IMG/VR virus record: IMGVR_UViG_3300029258_003221
Coordinates: 1 to 64,000 of that record
DNA length: 64,000 bases
Direction: 5' to 3' (one strand)
Made by a program: the position numbers and the translations under genes. Positions within the stretch are counted from its first letter, which is position 1. The number at the start of each line of letters is the position of its first letter. The notes under the pieces are model-generated. The model did not search any database. It had not been told where the DNA came from and saw only the letters and a program-made list of their open reading frames with translations. Positions 22,922 through 63,468 of the stretch are shown here, in pieces.

Positions 22922-23236
22922 ATGAAATTCAAGGACTTCATGGAAAACAGGCAGCTTGGCAGATCATTGCCCGAAACAGGCTACACAAGCCCACATGCCA
23001 TCATTTATCGAGCCTCACTGGAACCCGATCTCTTGGGAAACCGTGAATATGTGACCATGAGCCGTAAATTCGCAGTCGAACACGCAGAACACCAAGCGGC
23101 TGTGGAAGAAGAGCCATGTAGTGTTTACCGCTATCTGGTGAAGTCCTCGAATGTCTATGAGGCATACAATCCCGGAGAGTATTTCTATGCTGGACCACCG
23201 GTTCAGGGAAGGATCATACATGTTGCAGAAGTTTAA
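22922..23236 (+). CDS. ADP-ribosyltransferase-like small protein with a capsid-targeting-like N-terminus
   Basis: MKFKDFMEN; IYRA...VTMSRKFA...GEYFY resembles an R-S-E triad. Confidence 0.45.
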   Translation: MKFKDFMENRQLGRSLPETGYTSPHAIIYRASLEPDLLGNREYVTMSRKFAVEHAEHQAAVEEEPCSVYRYLVKSSNVYEAYNPGEYFYAGPPVQGRIIHVAEV

Positions 23237-23768
23237 GACATTCCAAAGGTTTCTGACGGAGAAGAAGGATGCTGATTACAGCTACTCCTGCGTCATGTTG
23301 ATGTTCCCCTCCGAAGATGCCAAAAATGTCCTAGACTGGTCCAAGCAACACATCCCGGACGACAAAATCTTTGAGGATGATGACAAAGGCCGAGAAGACG
23401 AAATTCATGTTACAGTCCTGTATGGCCTACATACAAATGAATCTGGTCCCGTGGAAGAGATCATGGAGTCTCATGAGGGTTTTGAGATTGAGCTAGGAGA
23501 AATCTCAAAGTTCGAAAGCAAGGATTATGATGTCATCAAAATCGGAATCTCTGGAGAAGCTTTACATAAAGCCAACAAGACGCTCAGAGAGCTTGATTTC
23601 ACATCGAATTACGATGAATACAAGCCACACTGCACGATTGCCTATGTGAAAAAGGGATCGTGTGACGACCTGCTCGGAAACAAAGACTTCACAGGGCAGA
23701 AGGTTCCCGTCAAGGAATTGGTCTTTAGTCCCGCTGAGGGTGATCGGACAAAGATCGCTCTGACTTGA
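23220..23768 (+). CDS. 2H phosphoesterase (T4 57B/Acb1-like fold)
   Basis: EIHVTVLYG and YKPHCTIAY; start refined. Confidence 0.8.
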   Translation: MLQKFKTFQRFLTEKKDADYSYSCVMLMFPSEDAKNVLDWSKQHIPDDKIFEDDDKGREDEIHVTVLYGLHTNESGPVEEIMESHEGFEIELGEISKFESKDYDVIKIGISGEALHKANKTLRELDFTSNYDEYKPHCTIAYVKKGSCDDLLGNKDFTGQKVPVKELVFSPAEGDRTKIALT

Positions 23769-23815
23769 TTTTGCCACGAGATTTGGTAACATTCTCCTTT
23801 TGCACAAAGGAGATA

Positions 23816-24694
23816 ATGATGCAAACCCTATCCAAGTTAATGGTTGAAGAATACGACGCTGATCTAGGCCAAGAATGGAATCAAGATACACTCGATCTGA
23901 AGACCATGGTTACGGCCTTGTCGTTCCAAAGACACATCTACCTGAACCCGGAAGAGAACGTAAAAGCACGGAAAATCATTGAGAATGTGTTTCGATCACA
24001 TTGTGATTTTGTCGAAGTTCAAGGCGATTATGGCAATGTCATCGGTGGCTGGGATGCCGATCTGTCAGGCAAACACGTGATCGGAGGTCATTACGATGGT
24101 CCTCCGGGCAGCCCCGGAGCCGACGACAACGCCTCGGCAATCTCTTCTCTTTGCCTGCTGGCAAAGAAACTTTCGGACATAAAACCGAAAGATGTTGTCC
24201 TTGTGGCCTTCAATGGAGAAGAAGAAGGTCTTCTAGGTAGCTTTGACTTTGTTGAAAAGATGTCACCAAAGTCAGGCGTGATCCTTGAGATGGTTGGGTA
24301 TTTCGTGGAAGACGAAGATTCTCAGCAGATGCCTCAAGGTTTGCCAGAATACTCCGTAGGAGATTTCTTAGGCATTGTAGGCAATCGCTACACAGGTAGT
24401 TTGGGGAAAGAGCTAACAGACATTGCACGATCCATGAAGCTGAACCTTCCCATCAAAAACCTGAAGATACCTCTCGGCCTTGAAGAAAGATTGCCGGGCC
24501 TGAGTAACACCAGACGCAGTGACCACTACCCGTTCTGGAAAAAGAAGCTCCCGGCTGTCATGCTCACTGATACTGCCGAATTCAGAAATGCCAACTACCA
24601 CAGACGAACAGATACGCCCGATACCCTGAATTACAGTGGAATGGCACAGGTCGTCAGAATGCTTGAGCAGTATTGTCAGAAGTTACTCTCTTAG
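23816..24694 (+). CDS. M28 family peptidase
   Basis: GGHYD, PGADDNASA, FNGEEEG, ILEMVG, RRSDHYPF, NYHRRTD. Confidence 0.9.
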   Translation: MMQTLSKLMVEEYDADLGQEWNQDTLDLKTMVTALSFQRHIYLNPEENVKARKIIENVFRSHCDFVEVQGDYGNVIGGWDADLSGKHVIGGHYDGPPGSPGADDNASAISSLCLLAKKLSDIKPKDVVLVAFNGEEEGLLGSFDFVEKMSPKSGVILEMVGYFVEDEDSQQMPQGLPEYSVGDFLGIVGNRYTGSLGKELTDIARSMKLNLPIKNLKIPLGLEERLPGLSNTRRSDHYPFWKKKLPAVMLTDTAEFRNANYHRRTDTPDTLNYSGMAQVVRMLEQYCQKLLS

Positions 24695-24710
24695 GCAAAG
24701 GAGAAACACT

Positions 24711-24998
24711 ATGCCCAAAGCAGCAGCTAGACACATTTTGGTCGCCGATGAAGCGACATGCAGCCTTATCAAACAACAAATCGAAAGCGGAGAAGCCACT
24801 TTCGAAGAACTCGCCAGACAACACTCCAAATGCCCTTCAGGTAAGGCCGCAGGTGGAAGCCTCGGAACGTTTGAACCGGGACGTATGGTTCCTGAATTTG
24901 ATCAAGTTTGCTTCAATAGCATGGTTGGCGAAGTGCACGGTCCTGTGAAAACTCAATTTGGTTACCACTTGATTGAGATTACAAATCGAATCGACTAA
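24711..24998 (+). CDS. ppiC: Parvulin-type peptidyl-prolyl isomerase
   Basis: ARHILV, FEELARQHSKCPSG, GGSLGTF, MVPEFD, GPVKTQFGYHLI. Confidence 0.95.
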   Translation: MPKAAARHILVADEATCSLIKQQIESGEATFEELARQHSKCPSGKAAGGSLGTFEPGRMVPEFDQVCFNSMVGEVHGPVKTQFGYHLIEITNRID

Positions 24999-25216
24999 CC
25001 CTCGACCTTTATATCTTTGATGTAATCTCCACCGTCACCATCCCAGTGGAACCTCTTTTCTCTCTCGTCATCTGGATCAACGATGATTGAGAACGAATGA
25101 CCCGTGTTCCCATTGGATTTGATGTGTTTGATCAAGTCCTCAAGCTCATTGTCCTGATCATGACACGTGATTGTTATGGTTTTGGGGTTCTCACGCCATT
25201 CGTTTAAGCTTTTCAT
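24995..25216 (-). CDS. Small protein with a capsid-targeting-like N-terminus
   Basis: MKSLNEWRE; CCTATATA upstream. Confidence 0.6.
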   Translation of the reverse strand: MKSLNEWRENPKTITITCHDQDNELEDLIKHIKSNGNTGHSFSIIVDPDDEREKRFHWDGDGGDYIKDIKVEG

Positions 25217-25293
25217 ACAAACATACCTTCAAAGGTTTATGAAGCCTCTTGATACGCTTCGGGGGTCTTCTGACTGGTTTATATAGGTTTGTT

Positions 25294-25689
25294 TCACAAA
25301 ATAATCCGAGTTTCATAGGTCCAACTCCTGAAATGCCCTGAGCAATTCGCTATGGCAATTTGATGGAAAAGTGCACCGCCGCACACACTCACAGTCTCCA
25401 AGCTTTGGCCATAACTGTAATAAAATGACACGTGAGGATTCTCAGGAAACCAAGGCTGAACCGGGCTCACATGGTAATACAAGGCACTGAAATCCTCTCC
25501 GTATTCCGCTATTGGAGAGCCTTGTAAATTCAGGTAAACTGAGTTGAAATCACCTGATAGAAATGATTCAACTTCCTCTTTCTCTAAGAAAGAGTTGAGA
25601 GTCAGGTGAATTGGAAATCCATTCGTTAGGGAATTCCATGAATGCCTTTCGCTGGGCATCAACCAAACACACCATTTGAAGCTTTTCAT
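25294..25689 (-). CDS. Hypothetical protein
   Basis: ORF track; start refined. Confidence 0.45.
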   Translation of the reverse strand: MKSFKWCVWLMPSERHSWNSLTNGFPIHLTLNSFLEKEEVESFLSGDFNSVYLNLQGSPIAEYGEDFSALYYHVSPVQPWFPENPHVSFYYSYGQSLETVSVCGGALFHQIAIANCSGHFRSWTYETRIIL

Positions 25690-28765: not shown

Positions 28766-28781
28766 GCTGTATATATGAGAC

Positions 28782-32443: not shown

Positions 32444-32861
32444 ACTCCTCCTCTGCTATGAACTTGCCGAAATCATGTTCATTGAACTCAGCAGTTTCAT
32501 AGACATCCCATCCAAGAACAACAGGGTCTTCGCCAACAGGCAAAGGCTGTCCATGTCCATCTAACAATGTGCCATCACGTTTTACATCAATGTGTTTAGC
32601 TCGCCAGCCATCGTACCAAAAGCCACCACGATTGAATGTGATGCAACCTTTGGGTTTGTATTCAACAACAATGTCAAATGTTGCTTCCTGCCCCATACTA
32701 ACAGGCTTGCGTTGCTTGAATTCTTTGATCTTGCAACTTTTGGGTTCTTTGCTCATCCACTCTGTTTCATTCAACTTATTCATTAGACCAAACATCAACT
32801 TTGTTGGGTCTTTCGTAACCAACTCGAACTTCAAGTAAGTTGGATTCACATTATCGGTCAT
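32421..32861 (-). CDS. Cargo hypothetical protein
   Basis: ORF track; overlaps both neighbours. Confidence 0.7.
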   Translation of the reverse strand: MTDNVNPTYLKFELVTKDPTKLMFGLMNKLNETEWMSKEPKSCKIKEFKQRKPVSMGQEATFDIVVEYKPKGCITFNRGGFWYDGWRAKHIDVKRDGTLLDGHGQPLPVGEDPVVLGWDVYETAEFNEHDFGKFIAEEECEDTEGL

Positions 32862-38623: not shown

Positions 38624-38650
38624 AGCTTTCTCCTTAATCTCTAACATCGG

Positions 38651-38765: not shown

Positions 38766-40205
38766 TTAGATGATGAAATTCGCCACGCTCATGCGGGCAT
38801 AGAACTTCGATCCTTCCCTTAACAACTTTTTTCCATACCGAGTCAAGATTCCCTTACGAGGGCAGAAGCTCTCAGGATCAAGCACTACGGGTGTTTGTGT
38901 CAGTGGCACGTAGGGACAGTAGAAATATCCCGAGTCCATGTAAGAATCACCTTTGTATCCCATGAGGATTTGACCTTGTGGGAACAGAGGGTCTTTGTAG
39001 AGACGCCATCTGTTGTTGATCGTACCAACATACTGAATACCAAGACTTGAAGTGAAGGTTTCAGAAGGTGCAGGTGCGAAACCAGCAGTAGCAGTTTCGA
39101 AGATAGAAGCAACTTCAGGGCTTGTGACAAGCCAGTTACATCCGCCTCTGAGCGTCTTACGGTGAACGACGTTAGAGACTTCGACAACCTTGATGTACAG
39201 GGCTTCGTACTTCTCTTTGATAGTGTCACCGAGTGCTGTATTGAAGTCCCAAACAGCGACAGTACCGGCGTTGTTACGCAGGTCAGTCAGAACCTCACGG
39301 TCGATCTCAAGATTGATTTCCTGAGCGAGGACAGCAGTCAATTCTGCCTCTGCATCAAGGTTGTGCTGAGATCGGAGGTCTTGCTGAGCTTCATAAGACC
39401 AGACAGCTTTGAGCTTACGGGTCTTAGCAGCAATTTCTTCAGATTCGACAACCAGATTAACTTCTGGGAGGTCTTGGTTGCATTCCATGTTGTATTCGTA
39501 AGAAACAACAGCGTGGTTTTCACCGGGATCACCGTCCCAAGTGAAGGTCATTTCGCCCGTGGTCAGGTCAATCGATCCGCTTGTAACAGCAGGAGAAGGA
39601 GCAGATCCAACGTTGGAGAAAGTGAAGGTTCCAGCTTCAGACACAACAAATGTCTGGATAGCGGTTGATCCATCATAGATGGTACCAGTGAGAGTACCAG
39701 CAAGGATAGGAGTGTGCTCAAGAGCACCGAAGGTGGAGGTTGTATCGCCACCGGCATCCGTTGTGGTAGTTTCATTCTGCACGAACTGATGCGTGTAGTA
39801 GATTTCCAAGTTTCCATCACCGGAAGCCAACTGCTGGAGTGATGTGCTGTCATCCGATGGGAATCCAGCGTTCAGATCAGCACCTCTCATGGCACCTTTG
39901 TTGCTGGAGTAGCGGAATCGCAGGTAGTACACCAAACCAGTTGGGCCGAGCAATGGTTGCACGGAAACAACTTTGTTTGCGATCAGTTGTGGGTAAATTC
40001 TTCGCACAAGCGGAATAGAAATTCGCTTGAACTGAGCGATGTCACCTGTGTCGGTCATGGTCTCATTGATGAGACGCTGGTTTTCCAGAAGCACAGCGGC
40101 TGTGGAACGTTCAAACCGATCAGAAATGCCATCCAGCATCTGAGTTCGACCCCATTTGGCTTCGATCTTAGCTGCTTCGTTTAGATATTGAGCATTTGCA
40201 TTCAT
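38766..40205 (-). CDS. gp23: Major capsid protein, T4 gp23-like
   Basis: IPLVRRIYP...VQPLLGPTGL...RKLKAVWSYEAQQDL...EINLEIDRE...GYFYCPYVPL...KGILTRYG. Confidence 0.97.
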   Translation of the reverse strand: MNANAQYLNEAAKIEAKWGRTQMLDGISDRFERSTAAVLLENQRLINETMTDTGDIAQFKRISIPLVRRIYPQLIANKVVSVQPLLGPTGLVYYLRFRYSSNKGAMRGADLNAGFPSDDSTSLQQLASGDGNLEIYYTHQFVQNETTTTDAGGDTTSTFGALEHTPILAGTLTGTIYDGSTAIQTFVVSEAGTFTFSNVGSAPSPAVTSGSIDLTTGEMTFTWDGDPGENHAVVSYEYNMECNQDLPEVNLVVESEEIAAKTRKLKAVWSYEAQQDLRSQHNLDAEAELTAVLAQEINLEIDREVLTDLRNNAGTVAVWDFNTALGDTIKEKYEALYIKVVEVSNVVHRKTLRGGCNWLVTSPEVASIFETATAGFAPAPSETFTSSLGIQYVGTINNRWRLYKDPLFPQGQILMGYKGDSYMDSGYFYCPYVPLTQTPVVLDPESFCPRKGILTRYGKKLLREGSKFYARMSVANFII

Positions 40206-40239: not shown

Positions 40240-41148
40240 TTATTTCTCTTCAGGGGTTACACCTGAGAGGAAAAGAAGGTCGTTCATTTGATCATTTTCC
40301 ATGAGAACGTCTTCTTTCGGTTGTTTGTTATCAGCTTGTGGATTGTTGAATTCAGAAATAATCTGATCGCCATCCGCCACTCTATGTCCACGCCCGCTTG
40401 CTTTCTTTGCACTTTCCGCTCTTTCTTTTCTTTCGGTTTTCACTGATTCAGTGATCATATTTTGCTGTTCTTTAACAGCTTCGTTCAACTTGTTGTTATG
40501 CATAGTCAAACGAGTGTTCTTAGACTCAAGAACTCTCAGGTTAGCTTTAAGGTCATCGATTTGACGCTGTGACTCTTCCAGCTTAGCTGAGGTGACAGAA
40601 GAGTAATCTTCGTCAGAGAGTCGATCAGCGACGATATCGGTGATCTTGTCAAAAGCGACCTTATGTTCAAGAGTGCGAGGATCGTTGAGAACGTCACGCT
40701 TAGCGTGTTCATAGATTTCAGCGTTCTGCAACTGAAGGAACTGATCGACTTTATCGACCATGAAGTCCTTCATATCCTTGAGTTTATTATCAAATTCTTT
40801 GTAGAGTTCGACTTCGATGTTTTCTTTGTCGCCCTTAGCTTCTTCGATCATTTTGTAAGCTTCTTCGAACTGTTCTTCCATGTGGTTTTCAAATTCCTCA
40901 CGTTGCAGTTCCAGACGCTTCTGGAGATCGTCGATGATGGCAAAGGCTTGCTGATAACCGGCTTCACGAGATTCTTCAATCTCCTTCTTTTCGGTTTCGA
41001 GCTGCTCATAGGCTTCGTTCAACTTTGCGTTGTACTCTTCTTCGAGCTTAGCATTGGACTCTGTCATCATGTCTGCGACAGCCTTGGCAACATCTTCCAC
41101 CTGATCTTCTGGGATCAGTTTATTGAGTGCTTCTGTTAATTTATCCAT
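40240..41148 (-). CDS. gp22: Prohead core scaffold, T4 gp22-like
   Basis: Acidic coiled coil between the protease and capsid genes. Confidence 0.75.
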   Translation of the reverse strand: MDKLTEALNKLIPEDQVEDVAKAVADMMTESNAKLEEEYNAKLNEAYEQLETEKKEIEESREAGYQQAFAIIDDLQKRLELQREEFENHMEEQFEEAYKMIEEAKGDKENIEVELYKEFDNKLKDMKDFMVDKVDQFLQLQNAEIYEHAKRDVLNDPRTLEHKVAFDKITDIVADRLSDEDYSSVTSAKLEESQRQIDDLKANLRVLESKNTRLTMHNNKLNEAVKEQQNMITESVKTERKERAESAKKASGRGHRVADGDQIISEFNNPQADNKQPKEDVLMENDQMNDLLFLSGVTPEEK

Positions 41149-41149
41149 G

Positions 41150-41875
41150 TTAGATTAACCCCGACTTTATGGTTTCTGTTTGAGACTTCACAATACCGCC
41201 CAAGCAAGCTATGAGTGCCTCTTTGCTCACATTATTGGTATGTATGTTTGAGTCCTCATTTTTGAGATGAGAATTATTAGATTCCGATTCTTTTTCGATA
41301 ACAATTCCCCGAGAATTGTCTTCGTGTGCTTCATTCCTTGACTTTCGTGTAGTAGTATGTGGTCCAACAACTTTTTGCTGGAAGGCAGCAAAAGTAGAAG
41401 GGTCAGCAACAGCGTCGAAGGTGATAAGTTTATAGCTTTCACCAATAACGAGGATGCCATCTTCGTTTGTTGATCCATTACCAACTCCTCTTGAGGAGAT
41501 GCCGACCTTAACACCATCATTAATGAGTGCTTGAAGCACTCTTCCATTAGGTGTACTTAGGATTTCGCCTTCTCCCATGAGTACATTTCCTTCCCACCAT
41601 AATCTTGTGATAACGTGGGAAGCATCAGCAAAGTGAATAATACTATCTGAAGGGTGATCAAGTTCACCCAGCAGGCGTCGTTCAGCAATTGCTTCCTGTA
41701 AACGTTGCATGTTTTCATCCAAGACGTTGTATGGATACATGCGTTTGTTTTTGTTAACTGCTTCGGCTTCTTGAAATTTACCTCGGAACCTTACTCGTCC
41801 TGAATCACCAGCACTTTCGCAAAGTTCCAAGTTAAATCCTGAATCGTTACAGCTATCAATGAACATAGATTCCAT
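41150..41875 (-). CDS. gp21: Prohead protease, T4 gp21-like
   Basis: NKNKRMYP, LGELDHP, GISSRGVG, FDAVADPS. Confidence 0.93.
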   Translation of the reverse strand: MESMFIDSCNDSGFNLELCESAGDSGRVRFRGKFQEAEAVNKNKRMYPYNVLDENMQRLQEAIAERRLLGELDHPSDSIIHFADASHVITRLWWEGNVLMGEGEILSTPNGRVLQALINDGVKVGISSRGVGNGSTNEDGILVIGESYKLITFDAVADPSTFAAFQQKVVGPHTTTRKSRNEAHEDNSRGIVIEKESESNNSHLKNEDSNIHTNNVSKEALIACLGGIVKSQTETIKSGLI

Positions 41876-43886: not shown

Positions 43887-44240
43887 ATGCGGACATTTGC
43901 AGCTTACGCCCAAGAACGAGGTCTTAGAGAAGACATTGACGACATCCAAAACCCTGCTGATGGCTTCAAGCTTAATAGGGATGAAGACATGGGACAGGAT
44001 TATGACCATACTTTGACCGAGCTTATCAAAGCGGTTATGACTAAGTATGAACAGGAAACTATGCAGTTTTTACACGGTATTGCAGACCGTGGAGATCAGG
44101 AGGTTGCTGATCTTCTTAGAAAGCTTGACAAAGAGCACAAGCCATCTGAGCTTGAAGAGCCTCGGCACCCCACAGATATAGACAATGAGGTTATTCCACC
44201 TATTGCTGACACGGGTCATTCTGAAACAGGCGGGGACTAA
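43887..44240 (+). CDS. Acidic hypothetical protein with a capsid-targeting-like N-terminus
   Basis: MRTFAAYAQERGLRE. Confidence 0.65.
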   Translation: MRTFAAYAQERGLREDIDDIQNPADGFKLNRDEDMGQDYDHTLTELIKAVMTKYEQETMQFLHGIADRGDQEVADLLRKLDKEHKPSELEEPRHPTDIDNEVIPPIADTGHSETGGD

Positions 44241-45629: not shown

Positions 45630-45890
45630 TCAATCTCTTTCAGCTAAGCGATTTATTTTGAGGTCATGATATAAATCAGTTCCTCCAGACACAACACTTT
45701 TTACTTGAAGAGCTTCTTTTTGTCCACCCAAACCTAATTCTTCTAAGATAGCTGCAATGTCTCTGGCTTTCATTTGAGCAAGAGTTTCATTATCCAGACC
45801 TTTCCCATAATTCAAATGGTTAAGGATTCTTCTTAGTTCATCAAATTCACGCTGTCTATTTTCGCAGTATTCCTGAAAAGATTGCATCAT
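45630..45890 (-). CDS. Small protein with a capsid-targeting-like N-terminus
   Basis: MMQSFQEYCENR. Confidence 0.6.
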   Translation of the reverse strand: MMQSFQEYCENRQREFDELRRILNHLNYGKGLDNETLAQMKARDIAAILEELGLGGQKEALQVKSVVSGGTDLYHDLKINRLAERD

Positions 45891-46803: not shown

Positions 46804-49329
46804 TTACATTTCTGAAAAATCTATCTCTTCTTCATCCTGCTCTTTAGCGTAATCCTTGATATCCAGATTGTATTTCTGAATATCTTCTTCTGTTGGATCA
46901 GGTAAAGGCGTGGCTCCTGTTGGTCCTTCCATTCCGCCTGATGGGCCTTGATCATCTCCTGTTGGAGCAGGTGCTCCACCCATTCCCATATCATCTTCAC
47001 CGCCTTCTTCACCTTCTGGCGGTTGATCTCCCAACATAGGACTTGGTCCACCAGCTTCTCCACCAATTTCGGTTTCGTCTGGTCCGGGAAGTCCAACGCC
47101 CAAAAGCATTGGGTTTTGAGCAATGATTTGGAGTTTGAGTTCTTCCATCTTTTGGATTTTAAGACGAGCAAGCATCTTCAGAGCTTCTTCTTCATCGTAT
47201 TTCATCCACTTGGTAAGAATATCAAAGTCCGACATGAGTTGTGCTCCTTTCAAAGCACCGGCGTTTTGAATTCTACCAGCTACAACTTCTGATCTTGTTA
47301 GCTCACGCCAATCAGAAGGTGGAGTTAACTTAATTTCCAAATCCTCATAGGCTTCTTTTGGGAAACCAAGCAGCGTTAAGTGACGGTTGCAAATTTCCCA
47401 AAAAGCGTTCTGAATGTGAGATTGAAGTCGTTCGATCATGCGAGCGAACTTCACATCCTGTGCAGACAGGGTGATTCTTGTACTTTGAACATCTTCGTTA
47501 TTGAAATAGTTCTTAGGGAAATTCAGAGCTGTAAACAGTTTATTTCTGAAGTAGACTGTATCATCGATTTCACCAAGATTCTGAGCACCCGGTAAAGTTT
47601 CAACTCTTGTGTTGGAGTTGGGCCTAACAGGAATCCAGTAATCTTCATCGGCTGCTGGTGCGTGCCAACGTTCTTCAACACTGGAGGCACCCGGCAATCC
47701 AGATTTTCCGGTAGCAACCTTTTTCTTTTTGAACTGATCTTTCATTCGTTCAACAAAGGCTTCCGCCCTGTAAGGCGGAAGCTGGAACGTGTCAATATAG
47801 AACACTCTACGTTCTGGTGCTCTTGTCAATCGATAAACCACCATGGCATCTTCCATCAATCTCAATTGATGAGCAGGTCCACGTGCTGCTTCAATAAGAC
47901 TTACACCATATGGATAGAATGTTTGTCTATCATCCCCGACACGAATATGCACAACCTGATCTGCTGCGAATCTAATAGCTGTAGCTTGTTGTAAATCTGC
48001 TTCTGTTGCCTGTGTGACTTCCACACGGGAAAGGCTTTGGTAGTCAGGCCCTTCTTTAGACTGTTGGAATTCAACCAATTTTCCTTTGGTTGTTTCAATT
48101 CGATACATGCTGTCAGGAGGCAATGGAACAAGACCTACGATACCATGTTTAGGGTTTTCCAAATCAATAATGACTTCATAAAAGAAGTCGCCCATGATGA
48201 ATAATCTTTTGGCCATGTCCCAACATGTATTTTGGTCCATATTAAGCATGTCACGATGAAACAATAGATATTCACATTCTTCTTTGACTGATTCATTGCC
48301 GCAAACAACCTGCATTACTCTGCCATCTTCATTTTTCTGGCAATTGTGAACAACTCCCCAGTTTGTACAGAAGTTATGATGTTTCTCAACAGTTAGGTCA
48401 TAGACATCAATCTCTTCCCAAGGTTGTATTCCGACAACTCTTCTTCGATCTTCTTTGCGACCGAGCCATTTCATCTCTTTGTTTGAGAATCCAGCTTTTT
48501 CGATTCGGCTTTTAATTGTCTTGAAGTCATGACCTGTCATGTCAACAATCTGCTGAGTCGTCAATCCTTCAGAGATGTATCGACAAAGTTTGTTAACGCT
48601 TTCAAGTTCAGGATTGTCTTTGCCCGTAGCCCATTCGTCGGCAAACTGTCGTTCGTGAATCCAGCCTTTGCGATGAGTATAAATTCTAGGGAACTGATTG
48701 ACTTTGATTTCGGTAATATCCGGGTTTGGCGAAATGCGATAGAAAGGCATGAGTTCATCACCGGAATTTAGTTCACCTGCTTCTCTCCATGTACCTTTTC
48801 TGGTCATAATTCGGTGATCAGGTGTGCAGATCACATAATTGCCATCATCAAAAATGATTTTGATTGTTTTGGCTTTTTTGGTTTTACGTGCATCAAATGC
48901 CCAGCCAAGCGTATAATCGCCTTTATCCTGATCATAGCAATAGACTAAGAATCGCTCGTTTTCATTGACGAGATCTTCGATCTTTTTATATCCATGTGGT
49001 GTGGCGATAAGAGTATCGCCAGCCAAACAGGTCTCATCTGCGAAAACGGTCATTGCCATTTCGATTTCCGGCATATTTCGCAGTCGTTCGTATTCTTTGT
49101 AGCGATGAACTCTATTAGTGACGGTACTTAAATCTACGAAATCATTAGTGTCTCGAAGGCGAATGGCCCCTCGTCCACCACCTGTAGTTCCGTCATTGCC
49201 ACCCCTGATGTCAGGAATAGCTCCATCAACTGGATATCCCGCTCCACTGGCATCTCGGTCTCTGCGTCTTGCGAGTGGATCATCAGTGAAAGCGTAAGTG
49301 AAAGTTTTGAAATAATCCCACCAAGCCAT
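46804..49329 (-). CDS. gp20: Portal protein, T4 gp20-like, with an intein
   Basis: RLMEDAMVVYRLTRAPERRVFYID, EDYWIP, VETLPGAQNLGEIDD, FARMIERLQ. Confidence 0.96.
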   Translation of the reverse strand: MAWWDYFKTFTYAFTDDPLARRRDRDASGAGYPVDGAIPDIRGGNDGTTGGGRGAIRLRDTNDFVDLSTVTNRVHRYKEYERLRNMPEIEMAMTVFADETCLAGDTLIATPHGYKKIEDLVNENERFLVYCYDQDKGDYTLGWAFDARKTKKAKTIKIIFDDGNYVICTPDHRIMTRKGTWREAGELNSGDELMPFYRISPNPDITEIKVNQFPRIYTHRKGWIHERQFADEWATGKDNPELESVNKLCRYISEGLTTQQIVDMTGHDFKTIKSRIEKAGFSNKEMKWLGRKEDRRRVVGIQPWEEIDVYDLTVEKHHNFCTNWGVVHNCQKNEDGRVMQVVCGNESVKEECEYLLFHRDMLNMDQNTCWDMAKRLFIMGDFFYEVIIDLENPKHGIVGLVPLPPDSMYRIETTKGKLVEFQQSKEGPDYQSLSRVEVTQATEADLQQATAIRFAADQVVHIRVGDDRQTFYPYGVSLIEAARGPAHQLRLMEDAMVVYRLTRAPERRVFYIDTFQLPPYRAEAFVERMKDQFKKKKVATGKSGLPGASSVEERWHAPAADEDYWIPVRPNSNTRVETLPGAQNLGEIDDTVYFRNKLFTALNFPKNYFNNEDVQSTRITLSAQDVKFARMIERLQSHIQNAFWEICNRHLTLLGFPKEAYEDLEIKLTPPSDWRELTRSEVVAGRIQNAGALKGAQLMSDFDILTKWMKYDEEEALKMLARLKIQKMEELKLQIIAQNPMLLGVGLPGPDETEIGGEAGGPSPMLGDQPPEGEEGGEDDMGMGGAPAPTGDDQGPSGGMEGPTGATPLPDPTEEDIQKYNLDIKDYAKEQDEEEIDFSEM
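48343..49029 (-). mobile_element. Intein (229 aa) in the portal
   Basis: N-terminal CLAGDTLIAT, block B CTPDHRIMT, C-terminal VYDLTVEKHHNF...VVHN followed by +1 Cys. Confidence 0.95.
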
Positions 49330-49386: not shown

Positions 49387-50184
49387 TTGAAAGTTTTGAC
49401 GTGTTCAGATAACGCTCTTGGAAATGCAATTTCTGATTTGTTGCCTTTGCTTTCGATCTGGAAAAGGCGTAATGCGACAATTCATGGCATTTTGAGAAAC
49501 AAACATGCTTATCGTCTATTCAGAGAAACTCCTTATTTTGATAGAATTTTACCACTCTATGACAAAGATGATTTGTGGCATGATTTAATCAAAGATGTAC
49601 CTCAATGGTTTGAAGATTACGATAAGGTCTATGTTGTCAATAACAGGCAAATGCCGGGGGTGGAAAAAAGCGAAAAGGTACCTGTTGATTACCGTCCAGC
49701 AATGAGGGTGGCAGAATATGGAGAGCTTTTTTCGCCAGAAGATATATTGCTGGATATCAATTGGTATCAAAAGTACTACAAAGACTTCAAATGTCACAGC
49801 AAAACAGTGTTATTGAACACCCAATCAACCAGTTTTCATCGATGTTATACGAGGCCATTAAAGGAAGAATTGGCTAAATTAGGATTTGATGTTCGTGAAT
49901 TTAATTACAGAAGAGATATTCGAGAGAATTTACATTTAGTTCATCAGGCAGCTCATATTTTAACTGTTGACACATCAACCATGTGGTTGGCTAGAACATT
50001 AGGGAAGGTTCCTTATGTTTTTATGGCACGTGAATCAGGGACTCTTCCTGCTTTTGGCCCAAACACAGAAAAGAGGCATGGGCTTAAAAACTTGATACCA
50101 TGGAAGGAAAATCTAAACGATACAGCTCCTGACTTTATTGCCAGTCAATTTTCAGGAGCTATTCAAACCATTCCGGTTATTTGA
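49387..50184 (+). CDS. GT9 (heptosyltransferase-like) glycosyltransferase
   Basis: N-terminal ALGNAISDLLPLL; C-terminal LTVDTSTMWLARTLGKVPYVF. Confidence 0.65.
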   Translation: MKVLTCSDNALGNAISDLLPLLSIWKRRNATIHGILRNKHAYRLFRETPYFDRILPLYDKDDLWHDLIKDVPQWFEDYDKVYVVNNRQMPGVEKSEKVPVDYRPAMRVAEYGELFSPEDILLDINWYQKYYKDFKCHSKTVLLNTQSTSFHRCYTRPLKEELAKLGFDVREFNYRRDIRENLHLVHQAAHILTVDTSTMWLARTLGKVPYVFMARESGTLPAFGPNTEKRHGLKNLIPWKENLNDTAPDFIASQFSGAIQTIPVI

Positions 50185-50702
50185 TGGAAGTCTTTGCTGT
50201 GTCTTTTTCCATTTCTGGAAGAGAACACGTAGCTATTAGCCGTAAAACTTCTTCCAACAAACTCTTTATCGCCTTTGAGCCCCCATGCTTTATCTTTTTT
50301 GACATAAGCGATGGTTACATGTGGGACATAGCTTTCGTAGCGATTGGAATAGACAACATTTGATTTCAACTTTTCATTAAGTGCACAAATTTGTTGACTG
50401 TGCACTTTAACGAATACGACATCGAACAGATTTGATCTTGTAAAAAGGTCAATTTCACCAAGTTGTATATCAACACTGGATTCGTTTCTGAATGTCTCGA
50501 ATGTCCTACGAGGTTTATCTGAATGGATTCCATAGAGAATCGTGACATGCATTTCATTTTCACGTCCGAAAAAGGGGTCTTTCGGGTCTCGAAAAAGAAT
50601 ATGATCAGGGATACTCTCATTACCCCATTGCATAATCTCTTCTGCTAAATAATGGGGCACATCGACGTGGACAGACGAGAAATCATAACGAATATTCTGC
50701 AT
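50163..50702 (-). CDS. 2H phosphoesterase, paralogue of 23220..23768
   Basis: GRENEMHVTILYG and YVPHVTIAYVKK. Confidence 0.8.
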   Translation of the reverse strand: MQNIRYDFSSVHVDVPHYLAEEIMQWGNESIPDHILFRDPKDPFFGRENEMHVTILYGIHSDKPRRTFETFRNESSVDIQLGEIDLFTRSNLFDVVFVKVHSQQICALNEKLKSNVVYSNRYESYVPHVTIAYVKKDKAWGLKGDKEFVGRSFTANSYVFSSRNGKRHSKDFHQITGMV

Positions 50703-50737: not shown

Positions 50738-51448
50738 TTATTGTGGCGACATTGCAGCTTGTTGCACCGGTGCATTACCTTGGTTAATCTCCGGGTGTCT
50801 TCTACGAATAGCTTGCTGACGCTGTCTTTGCAGCCCTTCACGACCTTTTTGGAATTGAGCGTCATCTCGTTTGCCGAATTTAGCCTTCATGGCAAAATTA
50901 TCAATCATAGGCTGAGACGCTTTCATAAGACGATCATAGAATGCTTTAGCAATTTTCCATCCAATGTAATCGTTTTCCTGTGTAGCGTTACTTTGCATCG
51001 CACTCAGGAAATCACGCATTTGTTTAATGAATTCGTTTTTGACATTCTGCACACTTTGATCAATTGTCTGTTGATATTGCTTGAGTTTGGCCTGACGACG
51101 CATTTCTCTTTCTTCGTCGCTATTTTGCATGCTTTGCGTATTTTGCATGTTTTGATTTACACGAACTCTTTGATTGTATTTATCTGTTTGAGGATCTCCA
51201 CCACCAAGATTTCTGATAGCTGATCCCCAGTTAGATGGATTCATCATTGATCCACCCAAATTGAATTCACTCAGGAGGTCTTTTTCATTTTCAAATCCGC
51301 AATTAAGAAGAACGGGAAGTGCATGATTTTCCCAATATTTTTCAAAAGAGATATCTGACAGAACAATATTTGCACACAGTTCATCGAACTGTTCCTGAAA
51401 TTCACGATCTTGACGCTCTTCAGAATACAGATTGAAAGTCTTATACAT
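50738..51448 (-). CDS. Gln-rich hypothetical protein with a capsid-targeting-like N-terminus
   Basis: MYKTFNLYSEER; TCTAAATA upstream. Confidence 0.65.
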   Translation of the reverse strand: MYKTFNLYSEERQDREFQEQFDELCANIVLSDISFEKYWENHALPVLLNCGFENEKDLLSEFNLGGSMMNPSNWGSAIRNLGGGDPQTDKYNQRVRVNQNMQNTQSMQNSDEEREMRRQAKLKQYQQTIDQSVQNVKNEFIKQMRDFLSAMQSNATQENDYIGWKIAKAFYDRLMKASQPMIDNFAMKAKFGKRDDAQFQKGREGLQRQRQQAIRRRHPEINQGNAPVQQAAMSPQ

Positions 51449-52217: not shown

Positions 52218-54020
52218 TTACCAGCCGAATTCTTTTAACAATTTGTTGTGTTTTCTTTTGAAATGACTAGGCACAGCAAACTCATCTTTATCAATCGCAT
52301 TCATATTTAAATCTTCTTCTTCAAACCAATTGTCTGGAGCATCTTTAGTCAATTCAGCTTTGATATCTTCATAGATTTTGATTTTGAATGCTTCTTTTTC
52401 TTCTTCAGGAACATCATAACCAACAGGTACAAATCGGGCACGAGCATCACGTGCGTGCAAAGCCAGACACATTGCCATAATAGCATCATCATGGTGACCT
52501 TTTTCAGCTTCAGCTCGTTTGGTTTGTTTGTTGTAAACGAATGTTCCCAGTTCTTTAACGAATCTTCGACTACGAATTGCCATGCTTTTGTTGATCAAAC
52601 GTGTGTGTAGTGTTTCAAGATACAATGGTCTGTTGCTTCTTGTTGTTTTAACGCCTGCTTGTTCTTTTTTACCCTGCACAGTGTGAAAAATGTTTCCGTA
52701 ATGAAAATCGTGCTGTAGTTTATTGAGAACCGTTAATCCGCAACTTTGACTTTCAACAACAATGCATGCATCATTGTAGGTATGTCCAACCATGGCGAGG
52801 ATTTGAGCAAATGAATGCGGAGGGCAAGTATTACTGTAAAACTCTGCAACTTGTTCACATGTGCTTTGGTCTATGACTTGAAAACAAGTATTGTCTGCCT
52901 CTTCGCCTTGTCCTTCGGCAGGGTCTACACCGATGATATACTCTCTGCCATCAACAGGTTCTTTCCACACATGAAGAGCACCACGTTCCCACAAATCTTC
53001 GTCTTCAACTTTAAGTTCACGAGCTTCTGCACTATTGTTCCATTCCGGGAATAACATTCTCAAAGGTTCGATGTCTTTAATTTTTGCACGAAGTTCTTCA
53101 ATGATGTGTGGCGGAATGTAAGAATCACCAGCACCAAGAAAGTCACGAAGCACTTCCTGTTTCCAGCCTTTTTCACCAAGCTGAGCTTTTGTTTGTTTAA
53201 CCCATTTTTCATCGTGGTAATCGGGGTGTTCCCAATAGTCCAAGTCGATGATGTGAAAAAAGTTATCACCTTTTTCTGCATTGTGATATGTTTCTTCATA
53301 CCAGTTGCCTACACCGTTAACCGTAGAAATTGCGATACATCGACCACCAGTTGAAATAGTCGGATACATAGCTTTCCAAAACTTTTCCATGTTTGGAATA
53401 AACGCTGCTTCGTCAAGAATCAAATATGTAATAGCACGACCACGGGCAGCTTCTGGTGTATAGAAGAACAGTTTGCAGCCTGTATCGGAGAAAATCTTTT
53501 GGTGGTCGTTATTTTTGTCCATTTGAGGAGTCATCCAAGATGGAAGTTCCTCTAAGGCTCTTTTAGCGACTTCACCAGCAGCAATAGCTTCACGGTCAGA
53601 TTTAGATAAGACCATCATAGTCTCATCGAGCTTGAATAAACTTCTCCATAAACACCAGTTTACGGTCACGGTTGTCAATCCACCTTGCCTAAACTTAGAA
53701 ATTATGTTAAATCTGTAATCAGCGTATTCTTCAATTACCCTTCTTTGGTAATTGTACAGTACAAATGGAAGTAAACCGTGAATAGGATGAGTAATCTTAA
53801 CGTACTTGTGAGAAAAGTATGGAAATGACAAAGCACATTTGTACATCTCCAATTCTTGCTTCTCTACGCTGTAATTCTCAATATCTTCGATGGTTTCCAT
53901 TGGATCAATTTCCAATTCAAACTTATCGAATTTGTAATATTCACTGTCATATGTGGCATCATAGTACTCTTTCAATGAAGCGTATTTGCCACGCCAATTT
54001 GTATCAACAATGTAAGACAT
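52218..54020 (-). CDS. gp17: Terminase large subunit, T4 gp17-like
   Basis: SKFRQGGLTT (adenine/Walker A region), LILDEAAF (Walker B), ISTVNG, IGVDPAEG, HDDAIMA; start refined. Confidence 0.96.
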   Translation of the reverse strand: MSYIVDTNWRGKYASLKEYYDATYDSEYYKFDKFELEIDPMETIEDIENYSVEKQELEMYKCALSFPYFSHKYVKITHPIHGLLPFVLYNYQRRVIEEYADYRFNIISKFRQGGLTTVTVNWCLWRSLFKLDETMMVLSKSDREAIAAGEVAKRALEELPSWMTPQMDKNNDHQKIFSDTGCKLFFYTPEAARGRAITYLILDEAAFIPNMEKFWKAMYPTISTGGRCIAISTVNGVGNWYEETYHNAEKGDNFFHIIDLDYWEHPDYHDEKWVKQTKAQLGEKGWKQEVLRDFLGAGDSYIPPHIIEELRAKIKDIEPLRMLFPEWNNSAEARELKVEDEDLWERGALHVWKEPVDGREYIIGVDPAEGQGEEADNTCFQVIDQSTCEQVAEFYSNTCPPHSFAQILAMVGHTYNDACIVVESQSCGLTVLNKLQHDFHYGNIFHTVQGKKEQAGVKTTRSNRPLYLETLHTRLINKSMAIRSRRFVKELGTFVYNKQTKRAEAEKGHHDDAIMAMCLALHARDARARFVPVGYDVPEEEKEAFKIKIYEDIKAELTKDAPDNWFEEEDLNMNAIDKDEFAVPSHFKRKHNKLLKEFGW

Positions 54021-54109
54021 AAAATCCCCCAACTCTCTGTTACCTAGAAAGTAGTTATTAACTAAAAGGCGATTTTTGTTGCACATTCCAGAAAAAAATG
54101 AGGTAACAA

Positions 54110-60489: not shown

Positions 60490-60851
60490 CAGCAATATTT
60501 TTGTTTCGATTCGTGGTGGTAATCCACATGTTAGTTTGCATAGGAAACGTAACTTGTTTCTTTTTGCTTCCTTTTGTTGAGCCCCCATGGATAGCATTGC
60601 CTTGTTGCACGTTGATATTCTTTCTTACTTTTCAAAAAGAGGTGACATGTCCTATGACTCGTTTTGAAAATAAGTTGAGACGCCAACTGGGAATGCGGGA
60701 AATTCGTGGCTTTATAGGCCACTACATGATTTGGCCGATTAAAAGAAGAATTCGGGATCGAAAAAGAGCGAAACTATATCCGCCAATTAAGGCAACAATG
60801 TTTCAGGGTTTGCAACTCAACTCTTCTTCATCTTCTTCTTCATCCCTTTAG
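60486..60851 (+). CDS. DUF2784-like membrane protein
   Basis: VVVIHML...CPMTRFENKLR...G; ATGA overlap. Confidence 0.65.
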   Translation: MTAIFLFRFVVVIHMLVCIGNVTCFFLLPFVEPPWIALPCCTLIFFLTFQKEVTCPMTRFENKLRRQLGMREIRGFIGHYMIWPIKRRIRDRKRAKLYPPIKATMFQGLQLNSSSSSSSSL

Positions 60852-61065
60852 ACATGTGCCTTCGCTGGTAATATTTGGCATCAGGGCTTTTTCGACCATA
60901 GACAGGTGGATTCTCATTATTATTGTGATGAGGAAACGCTCCAGCTCCTTTTTTAGCTATTTCTTTACTGTCACGTTCGACACTTCCCACGGATGAATCC
61001 ATGGTGCCACCACCACCCGGACCAGCAAGACTCTCTATCATCTGAAACCACTTTTTGAATGTCAT
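60817..61065 (-). CDS. Small protein with a capsid-targeting-like N-terminus
   Basis: Start refined: MTFKKWFQMIES. Confidence 0.55.
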   Translation of the reverse strand: MTFKKWFQMIESLAGPGGGGTMDSSVGSVERDSKEIAKKGAGAFPHHNNNENPPVYGRKSPDAKYYQRRHMSKGMKKKMKKS

Positions 61066-61105
61066 AACACTAATATATACCAAACCAGCTTTGGAAAAGG
61101 TAAAC

Positions 61106-61624
61106 ATGAGCGATAATAATTGGAATGGCATCATGAAGGTGCTCTGGATCAAGCAGGAAAGAGATGGCGAAGTCATCTATGAACAAAATAACATTCGCAA
61201 TCTTTTACACACAGATGGTGAATCTTTCATTTTGAGAGCAGTTTTTACTGGTGGTCAGGTCAGTTCTGTGATTCCCACGAACTATTATCTGGGATTAGAT
61301 AACAGATCAGAAATTGTAGCAGCAAACACTTTAAGTAGTCTTGTTGCTGAACCAACTGGTGATGGCTATGTTCGACAAGCTGTAGCTTCTGCTGGGGATT
61401 TTGTGGTGACTCTTGAAGGTGTAAATTACCGAGCAACAAGTCCAATTGTTGCATTTCGTGCAGAAGGTGGTAGCTGGGGACCAGTCCAGAATATTTTTCT
61501 AACAGATAGTGCCACCACATCAGGCACATTAATATCTTCTGCTCAATTAGATACAGCAGTGACTGTTGCCGATGGGGATCAAGTTACCATGAGAATTGGC
61601 TTGGTGTTGAAAGATTGTCCATAA
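61106..61624 (+). CDS. Tail-associated structural protein
   Basis: YYLGL...EPTGDGYVRQAV...F.A.GGSWG...GTLISSA.L...TVADGDQ pattern of phage tail-fibre-associated proteins. Confidence 0.65.
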   Translation: MSDNNWNGIMKVLWIKQERDGEVIYEQNNIRNLLHTDGESFILRAVFTGGQVSSVIPTNYYLGLDNRSEIVAANTLSSLVAEPTGDGYVRQAVASAGDFVVTLEGVNYRATSPIVAFRAEGGSWGPVQNIFLTDSATTSGTLISSAQLDTAVTVADGDQVTMRIGLVLKDCP

Positions 61625-61625
61625 A

Positions 61626-62114
61626 TCATCTTTCAGATTCAGATATTTCACCAATGTCAATATAATGCATGATTCTTAAGAAATCATCATTTTGTTTAAC
61701 TTTATTTTGCTCTCTATAATTCAAACGCTTAGAGCCTCCGTCCTCAATGTCCAAAAGAGATTTTGAGGAAATTTCAGATACAAATAAAGAATAATAATCA
61801 TCTCTTTGAGATTGATCCATATCTCTCCATTCTTTGTCGCTGATTCTTTTTGGCTCACTGCCTGCCCTGTTTGGCAGCGTAATTTCATATCCGTCTGCTA
61901 ATATCTTGACGGGATGCATTTTTTGATTGTTTTTGAGGTGATATTTGCAAAATATTTCCTTTGCTGGTTCGGATGTTGCTTTTCCCATGAACCATACTGG
62001 CACAGACACTCCTACAACTTCTACGGACTTTCCGTTGTGAAGATCATATCTTTGATCACGTGTCAGACGAATGTTGTGATGAATTGTTAGTGAAAGCATT
62101 TGTTTTGTGTTCAT
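61626..62114 (-). CDS. Hypothetical protein
   Basis: ORF track. Confidence 0.6.
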   Translation of the reverse strand: MNTKQMLSLTIHHNIRLTRDQRYDLHNGKSVEVVGVSVPVWFMGKATSEPAKEIFCKYHLKNNQKMHPVKILADGYEITLPNRAGSEPKRISDKEWRDMDQSQRDDYYSLFVSEISSKSLLDIEDGGSKRLNYREQNKVKQNDDFLRIMHYIDIGEISESER

Positions 62115-62146
62115 ACATACCTTTAGGTCTTAACTGGAGTGTAACC

Positions 62147-63106
62147 ATGCAAGGAATTCGTGTAAAGTACATTTTGTATCCGATGTCAATCATAATGAGC
62201 ATAGTCATGTTAATTGGCATCAGTATAAGAGTGCAAAGAGCAAACGTTCTGGAAATATCTGTTGATAACTCTAATCCAGAATTGACGATGCCTATCGTTG
62301 AAAATGACCCTTATGCACACTTGGCTGCAAATGTAGCTCCTGTTCCCAAAAGAGGAATTGAGTATCGAAAATGGTTGCAGGCTTCTGTTAGAATTCGAGT
62401 ATCTTATGCATCAGGTTCAGGCACTATTGTCTATTACGATGATAAAACAGGTTGGGCATACATTCAGACATGTGGCCATCTTTGGGGTGGCATGAAAAGC
62501 AACATGTCAGCCGAAGAAGGTAAACGAAGAAAAGAAAAATGTCGTATCAATGTTTTTTATCACAACGAAAAGAAACTTGATCAACCAAAAACATACAGTG
62601 CAGATGTGTTGTATTACAATAACAGAGGTGGTCCCGGTGGTGGACACGATTGTGCGTTAATTCGATTTAAGCCCGATTGGAAACCAAATTATTTTCCTAT
62701 TGCACCTTCAGATTATCGATATAAACCGGGCTCAATGTTACATTCAACTGGATGCGATGGCGCAACAGAAGCTGCACATTATGATGTGCGTGTCATTGGG
62801 TTTTCTAATTCTTCTCAGTTTCCAAGTTTGGTCACTACAGAAAACAGTCCAAGACCCGGACGTTCGGGTGGAGGATTGATGAATGACAGTTATTTTGTGG
62901 CTATTTGCTGGGGCACTTCAGATCGTTCTGGTAATGGTAACGGGTTCTTTACACCATTGAGTACAGTACGATATTACAACGAAAAAAATGGATTTGGTTG
63001 GCTTAATGATGTTGGAAGTAGTTTGGCAAGACAAATCCCAATTAAAGACAGAAACAACCCTCAAAGAAGGTATGAACCAGATTACATTCCATTGCCGGGA
63101 CGTTAA
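62147..63106 (+). CDS. Membrane-anchored trypsin-like serine protease
   Basis: TM; TCGHL (His), HDCALI (Asp), GRSGGG (Ser); start refined. Confidence 0.88.
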   Translation: MQGIRVKYILYPMSIIMSIVMLIGISIRVQRANVLEISVDNSNPELTMPIVENDPYAHLAANVAPVPKRGIEYRKWLQASVRIRVSYASGSGTIVYYDDKTGWAYIQTCGHLWGGMKSNMSAEEGKRRKEKCRINVFYHNEKKLDQPKTYSADVLYYNNRGGPGGGHDCALIRFKPDWKPNYFPIAPSDYRYKPGSMLHSTGCDGATEAAHYDVRVIGFSNSSQFPSLVTTENSPRPGRSGGGLMNDSYFVAICWGTSDRSGNGNGFFTPLSTVRYYNEKNGFGWLNDVGSSLARQIPIKDRNNPQRRYEPDYIPLPGR

Positions 63107-63468
63107 ACGTTGTCTCTCCAAGCTTTACCGAGTTCGCCGATGTGATCAGAATGTACAACAGTATCAAAATCCTGTTGTGCTAGTTGGAGCAATTGTCTCG
63201 CATATCCTTGTCGCCTAACATCTGGCATTGTGTAAACATTGGCAATTTGGGCATTAGTTCCATCTCTTGATACAACCTGAAGGGCACTAACAGCCTGCCC
63301 ATCAACCATGTAAATGTATCGATAAGAACCATGCGGTGAGACATACTTCACCGCACCATTCTTAGTGTCACCGCCCAAATTTTCTTCTGGGCCAATCTGA
63401 CTGGTTTGACCTGCTGGACTCAGAAGGTATTGCAGCATTTCATTTTCTAACCAAAGTTTAAACTTCAT
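63103..63468 (-). CDS. GNAT acetyltransferase with a capsid-targeting-like N-terminus
   Basis: IANVYTMPDVRRQGYARQLL; MKFKLWLENE. Confidence 0.85.
   Translation of the reverse strand: MKFKLWLENEMLQYLLSPAGQTSQIGPEENLGGDTKNGAVKYVSPHGSYRYIYMVDGQAVSALQVVSRDGTNAQIANVYTMPDVRRQGYARQLLQLAQQDFDTVVHSDHIGELGKAWRDNV

Follow-up and report, generated by a model that had tools for sequence, protein, structure and literature searches.

In bacteriophage T4, the internal proteins IPI, IPII and IPIII carry a capsid-targeting sequence (CTS), an N-terminal peptide of about 10 residues that was defined by Mullaney and Black in 1996 (reviewed in PMC9026906 and PMC3012670), and the concept has been known for T4 since that year. 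Aromatic residues stand at its positions 4 and 7, Leu or Ile at position 8 and Glu at about position 10. A mutational map of the IPIII peptide assigned targeting mainly to residues 4 and 7 and processing to residues 8 and 10 (PMC9026906), and CTS-like peptides are also known on the variable internal proteins of T-even relatives (PMC9026906, PMC3012670). The present analysis concerns similar peptides (hereafter tags) at the N-termini of genes in an uncultivated jumbo phage, the IMG/VR record IMGVR_UViG_3300029258_003221 (234,631 bp, 42% G+C), whose DNA occurs in metagenomes of sediment and seawater. The first 64,000 nucleotides of this record form the stretch that was analysed (the window). The probability that the tags are T4-type CTSs directing their cargo into the prohead is estimated at about 55%, and the cleavage register and an anti-defence role of the cargo are rated lower.

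The tags share with the T4 CTS the N-terminal location, the approximate length and the spacing of the two aromatic residues, and part of them also have L/I at position 8 and Glu at about position 10. Both phages have a gp21-type protease and a gp23-type shell, and in both the cargo is diverse and fast-evolving, with only the peptide conserved. On the other hand, the tags favour F...W-L-E, compared with Y...F-I-A-E in T4, so that the Glu often stands one residue earlier than in T4. At least 11-15 genes are tagged here, compared with about 3-5 in T4, and the cargo consists largely of enzymes (up to 484 aa in this phage and up to 1076 aa in its relatives), whereas that of T4 comprises mainly small internal proteins. 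Moreover, only the head module is common to this phage and T4, and the function of the tag is read here from sequence alone.

Another described system is that of phiKZ, 201phi2-1 and SPN3US, whose ejection proteins carry propeptides of 80-160 residues with the cleavage motif A/S/G-x-E (PMC5694885). In these phages, which are also jumbo, head-internal proteins are cut after Glu by the prohead protease and ejected into the host, but their propeptides are long and have no common short peptide, unlike the short tags described here. A further point of comparison is offered by the polyvalent proteins of phages and conjugative elements, reportedly described by Iyer, Burroughs, Anand, de Souza and Aravind in 2017. 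These have an overlapping repertoire (ART-PolyVal, ArdC-N, NADAR-type domains, peptidases and helicases) and the same proposed role as effectors delivered with DNA; however, their domains are fused in one giant polypeptide, whereas the genes considered here are separate, each with its own putative targeting peptide. Literature searches returned no earlier CTS-like tags in uncultivated jumbo or huge phages or on so many enzyme families, which is not proof that none have been described.

Enrichment of the tag at start sites

A sequence-only reading of the window had proposed nine genes beginning with a CTS-like peptide, and all nine N-termini were found at the starts listed in Table 1 (those at 25216, 28765, 45890, 51448, 61065 and 63468 on the minus strand). 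Aromatic residues occupy both targeting positions in eight of the nine peptides, the exception being 25216, which has Leu at the first. As a set of tags the nine held up in part: five are strong and two intermediate, whereas 28765 is weak and 43887 does not fit.

The proposal also called for a comparison of motif frequency with background, which was made by using a position-specific scoring matrix (PSSM) built from 47 non-redundant tags in 80 related loci (1.04 Mb around the capsid gene), from which this genome's own copy was excluded. Open reading frames (ORFs) of these relatives recurrently start with peptides such as MKTFQEWLNENR, MKTFAEYLAEAT, MKSFDEFLTEAK and MNFRQFIESQE. When applied to this genome, the PSSM reached at least 8 bits at 13 of 2901 ATG starts, with 1.13 expected (P = 2.6e-10), and at 9 of the 1180 ATGs that come first in their ORF, with 0.46 expected (P = 1.6e-9). 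None of 300 column-shuffled PSSMs reached 13 matches (mean 3.4, maximum 10). The pattern.{2,4}F..[FWY].{1,3}E was present at 7 of 248 N-termini of crude self-trained gene calls, whereas internal windows of these 248 proteins gave an expectation of 0.57 (P = 2e-6). The motif is thus enriched at starts over background.

An effect of chance or of N-terminal composition, over-read from a loose pattern, would be compatible with the lack of enrichment of the loose regular expression over all ATGs in six frames (9/908 first and 10/1477 internal), and 43887, perhaps together with 28765, is probably a chance match. For the set as a whole, this explanation is rejected by the profile tests with three different nulls. 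Moreover, the strict DNA pattern for M-x(1-3)-F-x-x-W-L-E matched 21 times in five related genomes and not once in the reversed control, and tags are kept in orthologues, so that chance appears very improbable.

Six more tagged genes were found beyond the window, at genome positions 105361, 107683, 109146, 109458, 112084 and 112347. All tags lie at 22.9-112.3 kb, the stretch that contains every recognised virion gene, and no tag was found at 113-234 kb except for one 6.5-bit hydrophobic ORF. Among the large ORFs at 64-116 kb, a baseplate wedge protein (gene at 93.5-95.1 kb) was the only product recognised by PHROG searches.

Portability of the tag

The 101 tagged ORFs in the 1.04 Mb of relatives fall into 68 cargo clusters (42-1076 aa), which have no detectable mutual similarity past the first 15 residues. 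Pfam matches of the cluster representatives include GNAT, PolyA_pol, NADAR, UvrD helicase, C39-like peptidase, AAA_33, FMN reductase, 2H/Acb1, NIF phosphatase, ArdC-N and DUF5661. At least six Pfam families occur among the tagged cargo of this genome, and the Pfam domains begin after the tag. Judged from these sequences, the tag is a portable add-on, acting at the protein level, to unrelated cargo.

Two gene families illustrate this behaviour. The tagged 2H proteins (that at 23220 and one of a relative) have an N-terminal extension of 14-19 residues that is absent from an untagged 2H/Acb1-like paralogue in the window, which serves as an internal control and aligns with the tagged protein from its own residue 5. 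In a 13-member alignment of 22922 homologues, most full-length members keep the tag despite substitutions (e.g., MSFKQWLEMRQ and MRFRTFLEVRQ), and two homologues with other long N-termini have no tag. The AF2 model of the 22922 protein has a predicted local distance difference test score (pLDDT) of 90.5, compared with only 52 for residues 1-10, in which a helix at residues 3-8 is detached from the domain. Public gene calls start this protein at Met7 (98 aa), which removes the tag; gene calling may systematically misannotate or under-annotate short N-terminal tags like this one.

Upstream boxes and the level of selection

It had also been suggested that most of the nine genes follow a late-promoter-like box. 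A box does precede three or four of them, which is not most, and its late-promoter nature is unsupported. A CATA(C/T)ATA box 4-5 nt before the ATG was found at only three of the nine: CATACATA lies 5 nt upstream of 22922 (22909-22916) and 4 nt upstream of 63468 (63473-63480), and CATATATA lies 4 nt upstream of 28765 (28770-28777). In addition, TATATA stands about 10 nt upstream of 61065. Only four of the 12 genome copies of CATAYATA are placed just before a start, the fourth being at genome 107187-107194, and starts preceded by CATA(C/T)ATA have no Shine-Dalgarno site. Only two copies of the T4 late-promoter box TATAAATA are present in the genome, neither of them before a tagged window gene, and no gp55-type late sigma factor was found by tblastn with T4 ORFs. 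The rarity of TATAAATA, the few CATAYATA copies before starts and the lack of a gp55 homologue leave the late-promoter proposal without support.

The association between a box and the tag is nevertheless real in the relatives, where TA(A/T/C)ATA ends 1-10 nt before the ATG in 23 of 68 tagged representatives vs 29 of 592 other long ORFs (odds ratio 9.9, P = 2e-11), and Shine-Dalgarno sites are correspondingly rarer. This box is mostly absent from the capsid, scaffold and protease genes of the relatives. The short distance between box and ATG suggests dedicated promoters and mRNAs with very short leaders or nearly without leaders. A search for RNA-seq data listed no run that contains this phage.

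These observations raise the question of whether the conserved start is a nucleic-acid or translation signal (for example, A/U-rich 5' codons that promote initiation on mRNAs with a short leader or none) or a gene-shuffling recombination cassette. Such an explanation would account for the TA(A/T/C)ATA box before a third of the relatives' tagged genes, the scarcity of Shine-Dalgarno sites and the A-rich MK(T) starts. However, synonymous codons vary at all conserved residues (Phe is encoded by TTT 34 times and by TTC 30 times, and Leu uses five codons), and identical conserved residues have the same codon in only 48% of pairs. This free synonymous variation indicates selection on the peptide, not on DNA or RNA. 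The conserved aromatic, Leu and Glu residues also follow a helical periodicity, and the tag is found on genes with ordinary Shine-Dalgarno sites and, at 23220, shifted by four residues from the Met. A nucleic-acid signal is therefore improbable, and RNA-level explanations, like chance, are largely excluded.

Similarity to the T4 peptide and its head

The tag consensus reads M-(K/R)-(T/S)-F-x-(E/Q)-(W/F/Y)-(L/I)-E-(E/N). The first aromatic residue lies at residue 3-5 in nearly all tags, that of 23220 being displaced as described above, and F at position 0 followed by W/F/Y at +3 occurs in 99% of the cluster representatives, a figure constrained by the selection pattern. In a column left free by that pattern, 64% of tags have L or I directly after the second aromatic, and other unconstrained columns are also biased (K/R and T/S before the first aromatic; K/Q/R and E/Q/N between the aromatics). 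Glu is enriched at +2, +5, +6 and +8 (28-40% vs 8%), a pattern that would fit, as expected, a helix with one hydrophobic and one acidic face.

The proposed likeness to the T4 peptide was well supported by scores, key residues and head homologues alike. In the T4 GenBank record NC_000866, IPII and IPIII start with MKTYQEFIAE and IPI with MKTFKEFTST. The clade-trained profile gave IPIII 13.2 bits and IPII 12.1 bits, ranking them second and third of 1580 T4 starts, and the conserved aromatic, aromatic, L/I and Glu of the tag coincide with T4 positions 4, 7, 8 and 10. The last two belong to the L/I-x-E site of gp21, and Asp at position 10 of the T4 peptide blocks processing while leaving targeting intact. 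Furthermore, the maturation site of T4 gp23, SFLTE65-A, has the same aromatic-L-x-E shape, and FLTE ends the 23220 tag.

The head module of this phage occupies the minus strand at 38.7-54.1 kb (Table 1), with a gp21-type protease, presumed to be the remover of the tags, a gp23-type shell protein, and a protein assigned by its position as the presumed scaffold and docking site of the tags. The capsid N-terminus is kept as M-x(2-5)-[FY]-L-N-E-A in 60 distinct relatives, and three motifs are conserved, [FY]LNE at residues 7-10, LLE at 39-41 and [ILM]NE at 46-48, all of them upstream of the region aligning with mature T4 gp23. Such [LIM]-x-E-type motifs probably mark where the protease cuts a propeptide of some 48 residues.

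Based on the analogy with T4, we infer a route of docking, cleavage, packaging and ejection for the tagged proteins and, beyond it, a possible anti-defence role. The tag would form an N-terminal amphipathic helix of 9-14 residues, whose hydrophobic face (F, W/F/Y and L/I) would dock the protein on the scaffolding core during assembly of the gp23-like shell around it. The gp21-type protease would then cut after Glu at about residue 8-12 and free the cargo within the head, from which it would exit with the DNA at infection, so that ready-made enzymes would be in the host before phage gene expression. The delivered proteins would include the 2H/Acb1-like phosphoesterase, the GNAT protein and the small ART-like protein of the window and, outside it, a polyA-polymerase-type nucleotidyltransferase, an ART-PolyVal-like protein and a P-loop kinase.

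Several points weigh against this interpretation. The 43887 ORF fails the profile and matches only the loose spacing F4/Y7/E10, and the 28765 peptide has no Glu after the motif. Among the 68 clusters, 24 have [LI]xE with its Glu at residue 9-12 and the others have W-L-E, so that T4-style [LI]-x-E appears at the T4 position in only about one third of tags. The presumed scaffold had no similarity to T4 gp22 by BLASTP, and a complex prediction of this protein with the tagged GNAT gave a score of 0.01, which speaks neither for nor against binding. Beyond the head module, tblastn with T4 ORFs matched only denV, the Tk.4 macro-domain protein and one further ORF; with almost nothing else in common with T4, conservation of the mechanism is an extrapolation. 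Two further T4 starts also score highly with the clade profile, gp61.1 (54 aa, MKTFKEFIKED, 18966-19130 on the minus strand; 12.0 bits) and the UvsW.1 frame (76 aa, MLLEFKQFLYEAS, about 114210-114440 on the plus strand; 13.4 bits). Neither is known to be packaged in the T4 virion; they are either unrecognised packaged proteins or false positives of the profile, which alone is therefore no proof of packaging.

The same two T4 proteins would suit the main competing explanation, in which the tag is a docking helix for another common partner, such as a chaperone, an assembly or replication compartment, a membrane or a hub protein, and the tagged proteins are not virion cargo. An amphipathic helix is a generic binding element, which also favours such a role. 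However, capsid targeting in T4 is the sole experimentally defined role of a peptide of this shape, the tag is found together with gp23/gp21-type heads, phiKZ has no start of at least 10 bits, and the tagged genes are located among virion genes. As for membranes, the acidic polar face of the tag speaks against binding to anionic ones. Another partner is accordingly considered unlikely, and targeting to the prohead is preferred.

Tagged genes of the window and their cargo

The features of the window are listed in Table 1.

Table 1. Tagged and candidate genes, the untagged control and the head module in the window (minus-strand genes start at the higher coordinate; bits are scores of the N-terminal peptide).
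Feature	Coordinates	Strand	N-terminus	Score or evidence
Tagged small protein, 104 aa	22922..23236	+	MKFKDFMEN	11.4 bits, strong
Tagged 2H phosphoesterase (Acb1-like), 182 aa	23220..23768	+	MLQKFKTFQRFLTE	17.0 bits, motif anchored at F8, strong
Tagged small acidic protein, 73 aa, pI 4.9	24995..25216	-	MKSLNEWRE	6.9 bits, intermediate
DUF3293 protein, 93 aa	28484..28765	-	MGTFREFVRK	4.7 bits, weak
ORF of 117 aa, opposite strand inside head module	43887..44240	+	MRTFAAYAQE	-9.4 bits, does not fit
Tagged 86-aa protein, between portal and protease	45630..45890	-	MMQSFQEYCE	18.3 bits, strong
Tagged 236-aa Gln-rich protein, between terminase and portal	50738..51448	-	MYKTFNLYSEE	9.1 bits, strong
Tagged 82-aa basic Gly-rich protein, pI 10.1, internal-protein-like	60817..61065	-	MTFKKWFQMIE	7.9 bits, intermediate
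Tagged GNAT acetyltransferase, 121 aa	63103..63468	-	MKFKLWLENE	19.0 bits, top score of the genome, strong
Untagged 2H/Acb1-like paralogue (internal control)	50163..50702	-		PF13563, 2.3e-8
Major capsid protein, gp23-like	38766..40205	-		phrog_138, 6e-81; 28% identity to T4 gp23, E 1e-37, from residue 53
Presumed scaffold/core protein, acidic, 302 aa (gp22 position)	40240..41148	-		position and composition only
Prohead serine protease, gp21-type	41150..41875	-		PF03420 Peptidase_S77, 1.8e-26; 33% identity to T4 gp21, E 1e-24
Portal protein	46804..49329	-		phrog_213, 5.9e-72; tblastn match to T4 gene 20 ORF
Large terminase subunit	52218..54086	-		phrog_2, 2.7e-46; tblastn match to T4 gene 17 ORF

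The cargo had been proposed to include 2H phosphoesterase, GNAT and ART-like enzymes, and the first two assignments were supported. The 23220 protein starts at an internal ATG of the ORF 23151-23768, with a Shine-Dalgarno-like site (GGAAGGA) ahead, and passes the cut-off of 27 bits for both PF13563 (2.2e-10, 41.2 bits) and PF23474 (Acb1; 2.1e-9, 37.7 bits). Both H-x-T motifs are kept, with H63-T65 and H137-T139 invariant in the alignment. It thus matches the Acb1 model and the two H-x-T motifs of T4 Acb1, the anti-CBASS 2H phosphodiesterase encoded by gene 57B, to which it is 22% identical in alignment. In T4 the Acb1 gene adjoins ipI; T4 Acb1 is not known as a packaged protein. Directly after the tagged 2H gene stands an untagged gene with a TTG start (23765-24694, plus strand) for an M28 family peptidase (PF04389, 1.4e-22).

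The 63468 protein lies above the PF00583 cut-off (27.7 vs 20.7 bits), its domain starting at residue 46, and has an RRQGYA acetyl-CoA loop of the form Q/R-x-x-G-x-G/A; since the protein has only 121 residues, the GNAT fold may be incomplete. In the 28765 protein, PF11697 (DUF3293, 6.8e-16) is matched with residue 14 at profile position 1, which marks residues 1-13 as an add-on; an IMG/VR scan with this protein returned only its own genome.

For the ART-like enzyme, only a weak fold and feature lead was found. The 22922 protein had no Pfam match and no significant Foldseek match (best E 0.25, TM 0.4-0.5), but its top non-significant matches are dominated by the ART superfamily (Tpt1/KptA, PARP, Arr and toxin ART domains), and the language-model features of the Atlas point to Arr-ms at 0.86, as a lead only. 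ADP-ribosyltransferases have a catalytic triad (R-S-E or H-Y-E); R30, H54, H57 and E80 are invariant in the family alignment. An ART-like nature of this protein is therefore tentative. A tagged ART-PolyVal-like protein is encoded outside the window, at genome 109458, just below the Pfam cut-off; BLASTP between the two proteins found nothing. Other tagged cargo outside the window includes a PolyA_pol-type nucleotidyltransferase and an AAA_33 (P-loop) kinase. The non-structural half of the genome also encodes an untagged protein of 550 aa (218788-220440, minus strand), in which WGR and PARP catalytic domains (PF00644, 2.1e-20) are recognised.

Among the remaining candidates, no family match was obtained for the proteins at 25216, 43887 and 45890; an IMG/VR scan with the 43887 protein returned only its own genome, and the 45890 protein had no usable Atlas match either. 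The 45890 gene, in the gap between portal and protease, occupies the place of the core genes 67 and 68 in T4. The Atlas look-up of the 51448 protein gave no usable match and its predicted fold is of low confidence; a similar tagged ORF lies upstream of the head genes in a relative (locus L013, 1377-2204, MALTFSEYKK...FNKLCEGIVL). The start at 61065 is an internal ATG of the ORF 60817-61176 and gives the 82-aa product, and small tagged Gly/Ser-rich proteins of this type also occur in relatives (clusters 6, 12, 44 and 48).

Occurrence in other large phages

The capsid protein of this phage is 75-100% identical to those on many IMG/VR contigs, some of them longer than 450 kb, and on a 595-kb uncultured phage record, which places the phage in a large clade whose members are jumbo and huge phages with a T4-type head. 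An exact DNA pattern for MKTFxEWLE had 29 IMG/VR sites, mostly on contigs of 140-570 kb, and the loci around these sites contain 60 starts of at least 8 bits in 219 kb, with 0.8 expected. Tagged genes often form arrays, such as seven tagged ORFs in 14 kb at locus L137. A gp23-like protein was present in all five large MKTFxEWLE contigs tested, at 74-78% identity in three and 31-45% in two.

Starts of at least 10 bits number 11 in this genome, 7 in Stenotrophomonas phage RAS14, 4 in T4 and none in phiKZ, in which no match to the protease at 41150..41875 was found. RAS14 (OP752703.1) is a cultured phage of 319 kb, whose gp23-like capsid protein shows 31% identity and whose gp21-like protease shows 36%. 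Its starts of at least 10 bits include 281509, 167590, 30103, 154202 and 138721, with peptides such as MTQSFKQFLIEAR and MTKLSFKEYLETKE, and the MTKLSFKEYLETKE gene is two genes after the capsid gene. The cultured tag-carrying phages RAS14 and CM1 make the finding testable.

Given this distribution, a wider reading can be put forward, more hesitantly than prohead targeting in this phage, as a possibility. In that reading, the tag would be a portable address label among widespread jumbo and huge phages whose heads are of the T4 type (contigs of 140-570 kb), and would allow an injected arsenal of dozens of shuffled enzymes to be read from sequence. This arsenal, encoded in tagged-gene arrays, might comprise 2H/Acb1-like, NADAR, ArdC-N, ART, GNAT, nucleotidyltransferase, kinase, peptidase and helicase proteins.

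Should the tags act as they do in T4, the capsid-borne proteins of uncultivated large phages could be predicted from a signature of 10 residues. Such proteins act in the first seconds of infection, and virion proteomics of cultured phages is otherwise the only way to find them. Families with links to counter-defence (Acb1-like 2H phosphoesterase, NADAR, ArdC N-domain and ART-type) are well represented in the tagged set, which would in that case provide a focused candidate list of early anti-defence effectors. The targeting and processing logic of T4 would then be an old property of the gp21/gp22/gp23 head module and not a peculiarity of the T-even phages.

Neighbouring genes in and around the head module

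Genes of sugar-nucleotide metabolism, a cytidylyltransferase (PF02348, 1.2e-32) and an MptE-like protein, lie within the head module between portal and protease (44241-45628, minus strand), which is an odd location for them. Genes of mobile-element type flank the capsid gene on the minus strand (31337-32443, 32858-34849, 37514-38647 and 45887-46750). Among them are a gene for a phrog_506 transposase and one for a 663-aa protein that matches endonuclease, HNH and D5-like regulator entries. The gene immediately downstream of that for the capsid protein encodes an endonuclease VII-like product, and the portal gene is followed by one for a protein with multiple helix-turn-helix motifs.

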